Part shown: one piece after another, positions 19,937 through 25,223 of the stretch
How the letters are laid out: each line of letters starts with the position of its first letter
Position numbering within the stretch: position 1 is the stretch's first letter
Origin: Ascidiella aspersa
Lineage: Eukaryota
Assembly: GCA_963924565.1 (NCBI GenBank)
Contig: OZ004607.1
Span: forward strand, 29,760,001 to 29,824,000
Reading direction: 5' to 3'
DNA length: 64,000 nt
Notes under the pieces: generated by a model
The model's input: only the letters and a program-made list of their open reading frames with translations
The model's database searches: none
What the model was told of the DNA's origin: nothing
Program-made: the position numbers and the translations under genes

Positions 19937-22000
19937 TTAAACGACAAACGCGTCCTCGTCCGGGTCTTTTTTAGCCGATTCGGCCTTGGATTGTTGATAG
20001 GAGGTGTCCCAGGGATCGATCAGTGGTTCGCCTTCCATTACTGAAACGTGGCCCATTTTATTTGCGACCAGGTCGAGGCTGTGCAGTTCGAGAAGCTTGA
20101 GCGGGTCGCTCTCCTCTGGAGCCACGTTGAACTGGTCGTCAAATCGCGGTCCGAGCAGCCAGAGCTTCTCGAGCTGGTACCTGAGGGGTTAAAAGAAATA
20201 CAATTATAATTGGAATACTATTTTCAAAGCTTAATGACTTGACTTAAGTGCACTTAAGTAACTGATTTTAAATGACTTAATATTTTTATAAAACGAGTTA
20301 CCTAATTTGGTCCATTTTATGTTTTTGTGTTTTGTTAGTTTTTAGTTGTGTTATCGCTAAATCGGGCGAGTTCATTAATTTTCATAATTTAACATTTGAT
20401 TTTTATGACAAGGACTTGACTGGAAATTGACTTGGGACTTATTTTTTTTAATGAATTGTTCTCAGCACTACATTTCGCGTACAGACGTTGTTATTACGCG
20501 TCTTTAACATAGATGTAATAGAAGTGCTAACGTATTAATGTCAAACTTTTTGCTAGTCAGTACAACACGAAGATCGTTTTTTCGCCATTTTAAAAACCAC
20601 TTGGGTCTTTTGTGGCACAGTGACTTTGTAATGACATTATTCTAAAAAAATATGTATATAAATATGTAGTTACCAAAAGAGATATTCCTTTTCAAGCAAC
20701 AGTTTTCAAATATTAAATTAAAAGGTCTTCATAGATCTGGGTTCTTTCCATAATGACCATAGGACACTACAAATGTAATTACCAGATCACGTATGTTTTG
20801 ATTACATTTTCAATGTTTGTTTGTTTATTAGAGATCTCAAGGCTTTCCACAAGCTACATGCTTTTAGGTGCAACTTACACAACCAGCTTGAAAGCCTTTC
20901 TTCAAGGTTCACAAACTTTTCACTTAAAATAAAAATAAATTAGGAAAATATTTGTTCTTACTTGTTTCGAATTTCTTCAAGCATAAAGTGTACAACGATG
21001 TTTCCAAAATCAATGCACATCCAGTTGTCACAGTCTCTCTTCCCTTCAATAACCACAAAAGGGTCTGACTCCGCTTTTCGTTGTTTGTAAAGCTGGTTGG
21101 TAGTTTCAGCCATTTGCTAAGTGTAAAAAAAATTAAAGCAAAATAAATACATATAGTCAAATATTTTATGGTATGCAATAGTAAGCAAATTTGAACATGT
21201 TTTCACAGCATAACCAACCATAAGGTGTCTTGGAGATGTGGCAGTTACAACAACAAAGTAATCGGCATACAAAAGTGACTTGGATAAATGTAGGACAAAA
21301 ATATCTTCACCACGAACATCATTTAAATGCTCATGTAACTCATCAATAGTAAACACTCCTAAAAATATTAGTTTACAATACTATTTATTATATAAATAAT
21401 TAGAAACTTGCTATTGATTCAGTGCACATTGAAAATCATGTATATTTTAAATAAACTTTTAGTAGCATCTTTAAATTTTTGCTACAGATGGTTTTAACAT
21501 CAGGCCAGAAACAAATCTAAATTGGTTGGGTTTAAACATTGTTTGTAATAATAAAACATATTTTAACTATAAGTGATTAATATTTAATATATACCCTTTG
21601 ATGTTTGAAATTGTTCAGCATTATGAGTATCCATGTTACTCAAGGTAATTCGTTGCTTAATATTATTTGTGGAGCTCTCTGATACTGCGGTATCATCATT
21701 GAAAAAAGCTGTGTTTGTATGGAACTGTGCAGCATTCGGATTAAAATATTGTAATACAAAATGTTTTTTTCTGTGAGTGGCACATTTTGGCTGGAACATT
21801 TTCCTATTAGATATGGACAAACTTGAGAAATGATGTTGGTTGAACTTGGCAGCACAACAGAATTTTCGGGTTGATAAAGTAAAGTGCTGATCTGCTGCCA
21901 CAGTTAAACATCTGAAAATTAAACCAAATATTAGGCAACTTTTTTTTAAATGACATACAAACATACTATGCTACCTTTTTAGGCCAATTCTGATAGACAT
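19937..22000 (-). CDS. MALSU1: Mitochondrial assembly of ribosomal large subunit 1 (Iojap/RsfS family)
   Basis: Exons 22000-21975, 21911-21595, 21358-21219, 21116-20962, 20180-19937 (882 nt, 293 aa, phases consistent). Motifs [76 protein letters not shown] match MALSU1/RsfS. N-terminus MSIRIGLKRCLTV... is basic/Ser-rich like a mitochondrial presequence. An alternative in-frame start at 21964 (unspliced) is possible. Confidence 0.92.
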
Positions 22001-22530
22001 TGTGTGTTACTTGGATCAAATTGATTAACAGTATCAATCACAAGCAAAAGTAACTCAAATAAGGAATTGACCGACACTCTCAACAATCTTGCTTCGGTTG
22101 CCTTCCAGTCCCTAGAAGAGATATAAACTAGGTTACTGTTAGGACTATAAGAAAGTTTTATTAATTCACAATATATATTAATTATGATGATAGATAAGAT
22201 ATCCGGCAAAAAAAAACATATTATATGCTATAAGTTTGGTTGTGAGTTAGAGCTGTCTTGCCAATAAATTGCTGCAACTTTGTTCTTAAAAATTGATTGG
22301 ATGCAGAGTTAAACGCCAACTGTAAATGTGAGTGGAATAATACTAAAAAAACTATTGAAAAATATGACGTACACGAGCAAACGATTTCCGTCAAGTTTAA
22401 AAGTTCTTTCAATTTCTCCTTTTCGCGGTTCCTTGTCCACTTCAAGGGAACTTTTAGCTATGCTCGCGTGTCTTGGACAAGAAAACGGTATCGACACAGA
22501 AAACTGCCACTTTTTTTCAACGCTTTCCAT
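21979..22530 (-). CDS. LAGE3: EKC/KEOPS complex subunit LAGE3/Pcc1
   Basis: Exons 22530-22373 and 22111-21979 (phase-2 intron gtacgt...ttctag), 96 aa: MESVEKKWQFSVSIPFSCPRHASIAKSSLEVDKEPRKGEIERTFKLDGNRLLVDWKATEARLLRVSVNSLFELLLLVIDTVNQFDPSNTQCLSELA. Matches the Pcc1 pattern (PF..A.IA..SL..D.EP...R.....G..L.V.W.A...RLLR.S...F...L.LV..T...F.P). Confidence 0.9.
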
Positions 22531-23116
22531 GCAATTTCATAAGGTTGACAACAGCAAAGAACGGTTTATATTAAACTTTTGCTATTGTTATTTACCTTGC
22601 AATCCAAGCTTAGATTTTGTTTGTCCATGCGTAATGTTGATTAATCATAGTTGCTAACAGGCCCAATACAATTTTACTTAATCTACTACCCATTTATGGA
22701 CTCTATTATTTTTTGTAACGCATTTATTATTTTTAAATAATTAATTTTTCTAAATTTGTTCAGTAACGCTTGAATTTATTGTTTTATTTATTTGTTCGGC
22801 AAATTTTTATGATTTTTCAGAGGGGTTAATCGCATGAGTAAGCAACGTTTTAAGGTTGACTGCACATGTTTAATGATAGTAATTTGTTCTTGACTCCAAT
22901 TGATACAATGTAAAATGACAATAGTTGAACAATAACATGAATTTCATTAACTCCTTTGAGATAATACGTTACATTGATATGTGCGAAAGTTTAACCCAAC
23001 TTCAGTCTGCACATTTGGAAATCTAACGTCTATATCGCACTGGTCACATTGCTCAATAAAATAATAGGTGCCAAGTGCCAACTGGCTTGCTATGATAGTT
23101 TTATATAAGTGTGGAT
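22531..23116. promoter_or_regulatory. Putative bidirectional promoter between LAGE3/MALSU1 (-) and NFYB/PRDM10 (+)
   Basis: Start codons diverge only ~800 nt apart (22530 vs 23335); CpG is locally retained relative to the flanking gene bodies; possible short non-coding NFYB exon at ~22821-22836 (tttcag|...|gtaag). Confidence 0.6.
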
Positions 23117-23334: not shown

Positions 23335-25223
23335 ATGGAGGAATCAGCGTTTCCAACTAACTTCTTAGTTAACGATGAGAAAGAAGAAGAGGAATCATCA
23401 GAACAAAGGTATAAATAATGACTTTTTTAAACAAGAAGGAACATATTTTTTTTGTTGATGTATGCTTTAATTCAAATACTGATTAGCATAACATCAATGC
23501 ACATGAAAGCAAATTGCTCTGTTATAAGGTGTGAGATTTATTAAGTCAATTATTTGGATTATCTTTATGTGATTTATCAAAATACTATTGTTTTTTATCA
23601 GAATATACCCTGAACAAAATAAAGGGCCTTTTAGAGAGCAAGACATATATCTTCCAATTGCAAATGTCGCAAGAATAATGAAAAGTGCTGTTCCACAAAA
23701 TGGAAAGGTGTGTGGTCTCCATTGAACATGATATATAATAATTTATCACGTTTTATGCACAATTCTTTATATTCTATTAATGGTTAGAAAAAAATAGTTG
23801 TTTTGTGTTAAAATATTTCCTTATGCAAATATTGTACAAGCTCTCTTGATGCATCCTGTTTTTTATCAATATTATTATTTTCCAACCTTTGGGTTTCAGA
23901 TTGCCAAAGATGCCAAAGAATGTGTCCAAGAATGTGTGTCAGAGTTTATAAGTTTTATCACCTCAGAGGCTTCTGAGCGTTGTGCACAAGAAAAACGAAA
24001 GACCATTAATGGCGAAGACGTGTTGTTTGCTATGGCAACACTCGGTTTTGATCCCTACATTGAACCATTGAAGATTTATTTGCAAAAGTACAGAGATGTG
24101 AGTACTTACATTTGTGGAATGTGTTTAAATGTTAGGCGACAGTTTTTCCAGTAATTTTTTTGCACAGTTATTTACAGTAACCTTGAGGCTACATTGTGAG
24201 AGTTAAGTGTGATTTACTATTTCCATTTTGTAATTATTCTGCAAGCTTGTAGCACATTGAAAAGCCAACTCCATATGCTTTCACACGATCTGTTAATTTT
24301 TATGGGTGATAAAAGCATAAATACAGAAGAACAAGAAACTATGACTGACATAAAGTGTTTATTATCTATGGAAAAAAATTGATGAATAAGTCGAATGAAC
24401 CCAGCATTTATACAATCTCCAGAACTTACTTGTTTGCAGTTTTCTTATCATGGAATGGTACAGAACAAAAGATCAGTTGACAGTGCAGCTATAGATATTG
24501 TAAAAGCCACTCAGGTATTCAAGTATTTAAATATTAACACAGTGATGAGTGAACCAGTTTATACATTAAATTAGTCCTAGTTGTGTTAGCCTATGCCAGC
24601 CTATGCCAGCCTAGTCATTTAATTGTTTCTTGTACTTAACTTAGCTAACTATTCTGTGTACATTGTTAAGTAGTAGCAGCTAAAATAAGAAGACTACATT
24701 TGTTATATATTCTTATTTCTTGTCACAATTTAAAACTGGTTTGTCACAATATGTTAAAAAATTATGTTGTTGTAAAATATTTAAACTTTTTTTCTTAAGT
24801 ATAACAAATATATATCAAATATAATTTCAAATTTCCAAAATAAATTTAATAGCTAATCATATTCACCTATCTCTTATTATCTTTGTTACTTTTCTGGGCA
24901 TAATGATTAAAACAGCTTTGTACTCAAAATCTGTTGTATTATATATCAGACACTGAAAGCAGAAAAAGGCACTGAGCTGTATCAGGATCCACAACAAGGG
25001 TTAAGTGATGCAGATCTGGTGGACCATTTCTCCCAAAACAATTTTGCAGATATGCTTGTTACAACTGAACCCGCAAATTTGGTCACTGAGTTTTCAGCTC
25101 AGGTATTTTGCCTTTTTATAATGTCAGTTATTTTGTGGCGTTTTGTTTTATTTCAAGAGTATTTAAATATGCCTTCTTTTCTTGCAGGCCTCAGGTCTTG
25201 ATTCTCAAATACACTTTTCTTGA
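23335..25223 (+). CDS. NFYB: Nuclear transcription factor Y subunit beta (histone-fold CCAAT-binding factor)
   Basis: Exons 23335-23408, 23602-23707, 23900-24097, 24950-25102, 25188-25223. Near-invariant core [91 protein letters not shown]; C-terminus QIHFS*. Confidence 0.97.

Follow-up and report, generated by a model that had tools for sequence, protein, structure and literature searches.

In the accepted view, the operons of ascidians are resolved by processing into mRNAs with one gene each, and a locus of Ascidiella aspersa raises the question of how the second of two proteins is made where this canonical resolution is geometrically impossible. The locus lies in a window of 64,000 nucleotides (nt), the whole stretch of DNA that was analyzed, which is located at 29.76 Mb of a 41-Mb contig in a 308.6-Mb assembly of 75 contigs. 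It carries the genes for LAGE3/Pcc1 and MALSU1/RsfS, both read on the minus strand, and all coordinates are given as positions of the window. The proposed answer is an overlapping two-cistron architecture in which MALSU1 would start at ATG 22000, within the LAGE3 reading frame, a reading to which a probability of roughly 0.85 is assigned. Leaky scanning is put forward, at about even odds, as the main route by which ribosomes would reach this start in A. aspersa.

LAGE3/Pcc1 is encoded by an open reading frame (ORF) of 96 amino acids (aa), which extends over two exons from ATG 22530 to TAA 21981-21979. The Pcc1 profile (Pfam PF09341) matches both exons above its curated cut-off of 20.9 bits (exon 1, 43.7 bits; exon 2, 29.7 bits), and the protein is 63-74% identical to proteins of 90-94 aa in relatives. 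In another frame of the second LAGE3 exon, ATG 22000 opens a MALSU1 frame that runs for 26 nt up to 21975. Splicing of 21975^21911 keeps this frame, which then reads MSIRIGLKRCLTVAADQHF... and continues into the RsfS exons. Two of these exons match the RsfS profile (Pfam PF02410) with 28.8 and 35.1 bits at a curated cut-off of 21.6, the predicted protein has N- and C-terminal extensions of the eukaryotic type, and the C-terminus DAFVV agrees with the DDYVV of relatives (common D(Y/F)VV). Started at ATG 22000, the predicted MALSU1 protein has about 293 aa. A single Pcc1 locus and a single RsfS locus were found in the assembly, and a DNA search of the genome for retrocopies matched only the locus itself. 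Since both genes are single-copy, both proteins must come from this locus.

The shared-exon model, which is very probably correct, includes a candidate intron of 63 nt directly behind the 26-nt start segment. If the 63 nt are retained, the frame from ATG 22000 stops at TAG 21973-21971, and among GT donors only that of this intron leaves ATG 22000 in frame. Its GC content of 25% compares with 21-30% in the four other introns and its codon usage is poor, the codon-usage score being weakly informative, while the sequence from 21911 onward is exon-like with 38% GC. Between 21970 and 21799 no stop interrupts the MALSU1 frame (p ~0.03-0.05). ATG 21964 likewise lies in this frame if the 63 nt stay unspliced, and ATG 21799 is a later in-frame methionine codon.

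Relatives provide a comparative view of the arrangement. A search with MALSU1 exon 4 returned 89 homologues, the best of which are 60-67% identical, including MALSU1 of Phallusia mammillata; several of the clusters derive from RNA-sized contigs. LAGE3 exon 2 yielded one homologue of 90 aa and, in a second search, two more of 93-94 aa, while the search for proteins homologous to LAGE3 exon 1 gave no match. Nine contigs bear these 90-94-aa LAGE3 homologues and measure 923-1604 nt, three to five times the ORF length. Two of the nine, L030 and L031 (JGI contigs from related ascidian-like taxa), were analyzed. On each, Pfam recognizes Pcc1 and RsfS in two complete ORFs that share a strand, and the contig is intron-less across the A. 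aspersa intron positions, including that of the LAGE3 intron. In both contigs the LAGE3 stop is overlapped by the MALSU1 start in a 4-nt AUGA (A-TGA-TGA-TG), which belongs to a series of three tandem AUGs (AUGAUGAUG).

The position of the start can be traced from these contigs to A. aspersa. LAGE3 of the three relatives ends right after the motif QFD(V/L)(K/D).., whereas the A. aspersa protein is about 10 residues longer. An ATG stands exactly 14 nt past the QFD codons in both L031 and A. aspersa, where it is ATG 22000, and the TCA TGA of L031 corresponds to CAA TGT in A. aspersa. As TGT takes the place of the TGA stop, LAGE3 extends by 7 codons to TAA 21981-21979 and the overlap grows from 4 nt to 22 nt. 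Judged by its position, ATG 22000 is the orthologue of the relatives' MALSU1 start. Given this orthology, and given that retention of the 63 nt would bring the frame to a stop at TAG 21973-21971, the segment would have to be an intron. By the same comparison, the overlapping two-cistron layout is inherited and conserved in at least three taxa. The model of a shared exon with the start at 22000 and the 63-nt intron had been proposed in a first-pass annotation of this DNA, and it gains support from the two-ORF contigs and from the start position of the relatives. All coordinates and sequence statements of that annotation (shared exon, 22-nt overlap, 63-nt intron and 266-nt ATG-free stretch) proved correct, including T at -3 of the LAGE3 ATG and A at -3 of ATG 22000, and its suggestion to look for the overlap in related species is answered by the stop-start overlap in L030 and L031. 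The features of the locus and of the two contigs are collected in Table 1.

Table 1. Features of the LAGE3/MALSU1 locus in the A. aspersa window, followed by the two contigs of relatives in their own coordinates.
Feature	Positions	Strand	Remarks
LAGE3/Pcc1 exon 1	22530-22373	-	52 codons + 2 nt; Pfam PF09341, E=3.8e-11; aligned to relatives
LAGE3 intron	22372-22112	-	261 nt, GT..AG, 28% GC; acceptor 22112 is a candidate spliced-leader trans-splice site
Shared exon	22111-21975	-	Last 43 full codons of LAGE3 + TAA 21981-21979; in other frame, first 26 nt of MALSU1 from ATG 22000; Pfam Pcc1, E=9.1e-7
Reading-frame overlap	21979-22000	-	22 nt; within the LAGE3 C-terminal tail that three relatives lack
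Candidate 63-nt intron	21974-21912	-	Donor AAG/GTAGCA, GT 21974-21973; CTAAT branch-like site; acceptor tttcag/A at 21911; 25% GC
MALSU1 exon 2	21911-21595	-	Presequence-like N-terminal region; 35-38% GC
MALSU1 exon 3	21358-21219	-	First half of RsfS domain; Pfam PF02410
MALSU1 exon 4	21116-20962	-	Second half of RsfS domain; Pfam PF02410
MALSU1 last exon	20180-19937	-	Ends DAFVV, stop included; AATAAA then at 19924-19919
Short upstream ORF (ATG AAA TTG CAT GGA AAG CGT TGA)	22517-22540	-	ATG 10 nt before LAGE3 ATG; overlaps LAGE3 ATG, out of frame
L030	LAGE3 58-336; MALSU1 333-1187 (284 aa)	same strand	ORFs, Pfam
L031	LAGE3 to 273; MALSU1 270-1064 (264 aa)	same strand	ORFs, Pfam

This geometry restricts the ways in which the two cistrons could be separated. 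Because the LAGE3 and MALSU1 ORFs overlap, the usual ascidian operon rule is unable to part them: any acceptor upstream of AUG 22000 falls within the LAGE3 ORF, as it would at the AUGA of the relatives, so that polyadenylation coupled to spliced-leader (SL) processing cannot leave both ORFs intact. With the start at 22000, the sequence thus holds no SL acceptor AG that could take the poly(A) of the upstream cistron and release two complete messages. We infer that in A. aspersa one molecule bears both ORFs, that the 63-nt intron is spliced out, and that leaky scanning is the route to MALSU1. LAGE3 and MALSU1 would form one transcription unit that is driven from upstream of LAGE3; removal of the intron (21974-21912) would connect the start segment, opening at ATG 22000 inside the last LAGE3 codons, to the exon that begins at 21911. 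Ribosomes would scan past the weak LAGE3 AUG, which has T at -3 and is preceded by a conserved out-of-frame AUG at -10, and would then meet no AUG for 266 nt until they arrive at AUG 22000 with its A at -3.

The sequence preceding the LAGE3 start is partly shared with a relative. In L030, where the upstream ORF is located at 48-65, an ATG likewise stands at -10 of the LAGE3 start, 12 of the 14 nt being the same (ATGGAATTCCATGG versus ATGAAATTGCATGG), and the T at -3 is conserved in this contig as well. The conserved upstream ORF may tune the share of ribosomes that skip the LAGE3 start. Within A. aspersa, the arrangement expected for leaky scanning is present, with no AUG between the two starts and T at -3 of the first AUG, though with G at +4. 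The 266 spliced nt from the LAGE3 ATG to ATG 22000 contain no ATG in any frame, while 5.6 would be expected from base composition, 3.5 from dinucleotide shuffles and 4.0 from the local density of one per 65 nt. Empirically, a gap of 266 nt has a chance of 0.017 when all ATGs in 264 kb of the chromosome are considered and of 0.031 when these are limited to ATGs with a frame of 50 codons or more, and ATG-free windows of 266 nt at similar GC content occur with a chance of 0.015. Taken singly, the two halves are unremarkable (155 nt in exon 1, p ~0.09-0.14; 111 nt in exon 2, p ~0.18). When codons were shuffled with the Met-free amino-acid composition kept, the probability of no further ATG was 0.03. 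The ATG-free stretch is suggestive evidence and is not overwhelming; the even odds given to leaky scanning treat it as a single test on a gene pair already marked out as special.

Several observations weigh against this reading. At the LAGE3 start, G at +4 speaks against a wholly weak context. For the stretch behind it, the same codon shuffle gives a probability of 0.17 for at most one ATG, and the ATG-free state in A. aspersa could be due to chance. Conservation of ATG avoidance, for which the first-pass annotation had proposed a check, is not seen: in each of L030 and L031 two ATGs intervene, of which one is in frame (FDML), and for this reason leaky scanning is not the conserved route. The donor GTAGCA of the 63-nt intron is weak, and no clear class of short introns appears among donor-to-acceptor distances in the 264 kb sampled, a histogram that is uninformative on the plausibility of an intron of this size. 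In addition, an in-frame ATG with a G/GTR donor is found 40-150 nt before a random acceptor-like site in 12% of trials. The MALSU1 presequence of A. aspersa has no significant similarity to those of relatives, and the N-termini of the 89 homologues are not alignable; the apparent motifs TRKFCC and QHHFSS were rejected as being at chance level. Finally, assemblers join mRNAs that overlap by more than a k-mer, and L030 and L031 therefore prove overlapping spliced transcripts and not single dicistronic molecules. That these contigs represent RNA rather than intron-less DNA is in turn inferred from their mRNA-like size and ends, from the presence of Logan members in the same protein clusters and from a sister contig with a retained intron. 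Contig sizes of the LAGE3 and MALSU1 clusters mostly differ, and are equal for L031/P0103 (1116 nt) and L030/P0125 (1246 nt). Among the homologue matches, no fused LAGE3-MALSU1 protein model was present.

Two side observations concern the contigs of relatives. The MALSU1 ORF of one relative is split in two (P0097 and P0100) on a contig of 1316 nt, which is 123 nt longer than its 1193-nt sister contig; the split falls at the border of A. aspersa exons 3 and 4, as if an intron had been retained in the RNA. L031 carries three TGACGTCA palindromes (about 275-285 and 1060-1105), one of which follows right after the ATGATGATG start.

The routes by which MALSU1 could be reached (leaky scanning, a switch by SL trans-splicing, reinitiation and an operon with a later start) are not mutually exclusive. 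An SL trans-spliced onto the LAGE3 exon-2 acceptor at 22112 on part of the pre-mRNAs would yield an mRNA for MALSU1 alone, with LAGE3 supplied by the cis-spliced form. Such an mRNA would lack the LAGE3 ATG, carry a leader of 111 nt consisting of LAGE3 coding sequence, and present AUG 22000 as its first AUG, the 111 nt from 22111 to 22000 being free of ATG. The genome provides the substrate: the 16-nt Ciona-type SL followed by a GT donor (ATTCTATTTGAATAAG/GTAAAT...) has 884 matches, compared to 55 for a reversed control. These SL RNA genes lie mostly in tandem arrays of 584 bp on both strands (C3:5.21-5.45 Mb, with copies also on C1 and C2), and with hundreds of them in the genome SL trans-splicing is available; an Rfam search of the window itself gave no match. 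Furthermore, Ciona genes with a weak first donor are often trans-spliced to their first cis acceptor (PMC11155486), and the LAGE3 donor CGT/GTACGT is devoid of G at -1. In the relatives, the same switch would leave a remnant ORF of 16-18 codons that ends at AUGA and is favourable to reinitiation, and an assembler would merge SL-MALSU1 and LAGE3 mRNAs into contigs such as L030 and L031. However, neither contig carries an SL sequence, and the switch offers no reason for the absence of ATG from exon 1 (p ~0.09-0.14). As the explanation for A. aspersa, this switch is considered unlikely.

Termination-reinitiation fits the relatives better than A. aspersa, in which it would be an improbable main route. 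Here, ribosomes that end LAGE3 translation at TAA 21981-21979 would restart at AUG 22000, 19 nt upstream. The distance between stop and start falls within the approximately 20-30 nt compatible with reinitiation in both situations (19 nt in A. aspersa; the 4-nt AUGA in L030 and L031), a restart codon may precede the stop after a long ORF, and 19 nt is within the range reported for viruses (PMC10275272). Reinitiation at overlapping ORFs has also been described for cellular mRNAs (PMC3923131). The AUGA overlap of the relatives, where two more AUGs follow the first, suggests termination-reinitiation in these species. In A. aspersa, however, the overlap of stop and start has been lost, the stop stands 19 nt downstream and a single AUG is left. 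Reinitiation after an ORF of 96 codons normally needs a special RNA element, and the ATG-free stretch is left unexplained by this route.

An ordinary operon of the Ciona type would treat ATG 22000 as coincidental, and this is equally hard to credit. LAGE3 would receive its poly(A) at an SL acceptor AG (21912, or 21845, 21822 or 21804), from which an SL-MALSU1 mRNA would begin, to be translated from ATG 21799 as a protein of 247 aa or, if the 63-nt segment is kept, from ATG 21964 as one of 302 aa. The neighbourhood is that of an operon in that the genes share a strand, are less than 100 nt apart (their ORFs overlap) and reside in a genome with SL genes. Ciona cistrons abut without spacer, with 16 of 18 upstream cistrons lacking AATAAA (Satou et al. 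2006, PMC1488885), and about a fifth of Ciona genes are in operons (Satou et al. 2008, PMC2760879). Likewise, a strong acceptor lies 67 nt past the LAGE3 stop in A. aspersa with no AATAAA between. The first-pass annotation had argued that the locus leaves no room for a LAGE3 polyadenylation site or a separate MALSU1 promoter. Its conclusion that a single RNA unit contains both cistrons is supported by the relatives, but the argument is insufficient on the A. aspersa sequence alone, precisely because this acceptor and the lack of AATAAA and ATTAAA are what Ciona operons display. The coincidence of an in-frame ATG and a G/GTR donor upstream of the acceptor, at 12%, is affordable for an operon, as is the open frame from 21911 to 21799 (p ~0.13), and the RsfS domain of the shorter protein would begin at residue 116, like that of several relatives. 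On the other side, the MALSU1 ORF of the relatives begins at the LAGE3 stop, with ATG 22000 at the equivalent position, and the ATG-free stretch would be a second coincidence. In composition, the 63-nt segment is intron-like and 21911-21800 is exon-like in GC. ATG 21964 was accordingly rejected as the start since the 63 nt look like an intron, and ATG 21799 since the relatives start at the LAGE3 stop. Moreover, an SL added at 21911 would leave an out-of-frame AUG in first place, with a frame of 34 codons whose end lies 7 nt before ATG 21799; as a rescue of the ATG-21911 frame, an intron was rejected because no usable donor exists.

Other features of the A. aspersa genes and their surroundings were recorded alongside. 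No AATAAA or ATTAAA is found from the LAGE3 stop to 21588, and the first canonical poly(A) signal past this stop is an ATTAAA at 21583-21588 (minus strand), right after the donor of MALSU1 intron 2. LAGE3-bearing transcripts could end there if that intron were retained. The 26-nt MALSU1 start segment ends in phase 2, as does LAGE3 exon 1, and skipping of the shared exon (22373^21911) would consequently create an in-frame fusion of LAGE3 residues 1-52 with MALSU1. At 55%, the GC content of the last MALSU1 exon compares with 35-40% in the other exons of the gene and 21-30% in the introns. Approximately 1 kb upstream of the locus, exons of an NF-YB-like histone-fold gene lie on the opposite strand (23588-24154, plus strand), and because of this position LAGE3-MALSU1 and the NF-YB-like gene probably share a divergent promoter region.

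It is very rare for a cellular mRNA of animals to yield two unrelated full-length proteins by way of overlapping frames. No literature was found on the LAGE3-MALSU1 pair, nor on ascidian dicistronic mRNAs that are translated. The first-pass annotation had further suggested that the arrangement couples t6A tRNA modification to mitoribosome assembly, a claim that finds no support, as the papers found link the two genes only by one incidental co-mention. The locus provides a clean natural case, among the invertebrates closest to vertebrates, in which to study how a second long ORF is reached, whether through leaky scanning, reinitiation or a switch between cis- and trans-splicing. It also carries a warning for genome annotation, since loci of this kind will lead to wrong models of MALSU1 or LAGE3. 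On a wider and distinctly speculative view, ascidians may hold a class of fused-cistron units that SL trans-splicing is unable to resolve and whose cellular dicistronic mRNAs would supply a second full-length housekeeping protein, with reinitiation at AUGA as the ancestral state and a shift to leaky scanning in the A. aspersa lineage, marked by TGT, the 22-nt overlap and the ATG-free upstream ORF. If true, the shift from one route to the other would have been caught by comparing living species.

Several known systems share individual features with this locus. The MIEF1 mRNA encodes altMiD51/L0R8F8, a partner of MALSU1 that is made in mammals as the 70-aa product of an upstream ORF (PMC11837024). 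A factor of the same mitoribosome-assembly module thus comes from a two-ORF mRNA, as is proposed for MALSU1, but no evolutionary or mechanistic link connects MIEF1 to the LAGE3/MALSU1 locus, and the parallel is a curiosity rather than evidence. In viral termination-reinitiation, start and stop lie within about 20 nt of each other and efficiency drops beyond about 30 nt (PMC10275272); the UAAUG of influenza B is a stop/start case of this kind (PMC3035654), as are examples from caliciviruses, and overlapping ORFs are used in cellular cases too (PMC3923131). The AUGA of the relatives resembles these overlaps, and the A. aspersa start, 19 nt upstream of the stop, is within the viral distance range. 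Viral cases, in contrast, need a TURBS-type RNA element, whereas LAGE3/MALSU1 is cellular and its stop-start overlap was lost in A. aspersa. The TS-1stAS class of Ciona genes, whose first cis acceptor is the one used in trans-splicing (PMC11155486), is similar in its weak first donor and good first acceptor, and cis- and trans-splicing would be in competition on one pre-mRNA. At the LAGE3/MALSU1 locus this choice would switch between two proteins and not only change the leader.

The human MOCS2 gene provides a further comparison. As described in PMC9607355, citing Stallmeyer 1999, MOCS2A and MOCS2B are produced from a bicistronic mRNA with an ORF overlap of 77 nt by leaky scanning. As there, two full proteins would be encoded in overlapping frames of a shared exon, and the second MOCS2 ORF is reached past the first AUG, as is proposed for MALSU1. 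The MOCS2 products are two subunits of one enzyme, whereas LAGE3 and MALSU1 are unrelated, and SL trans-splicing offers an alternative to the route proposed for MALSU1. Among ascidians, the Ciona SL operons described above, in which the upstream cistron is polyadenylated at the G of the SL acceptor used by the downstream one (PMC1488885), offer the comparison from within the group. They share with the locus the same 16-nt SL, arrays of SL RNA genes, a same-strand pair on one promoter, the lack of AATAAA after the upstream cistron and partners that are functionally unrelated. The difference lies in the position of the second start: in Ciona operons the downstream ORF starts after the acceptor, while in A. 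aspersa and the two relatives the downstream start is located at or inside the upstream ORF.

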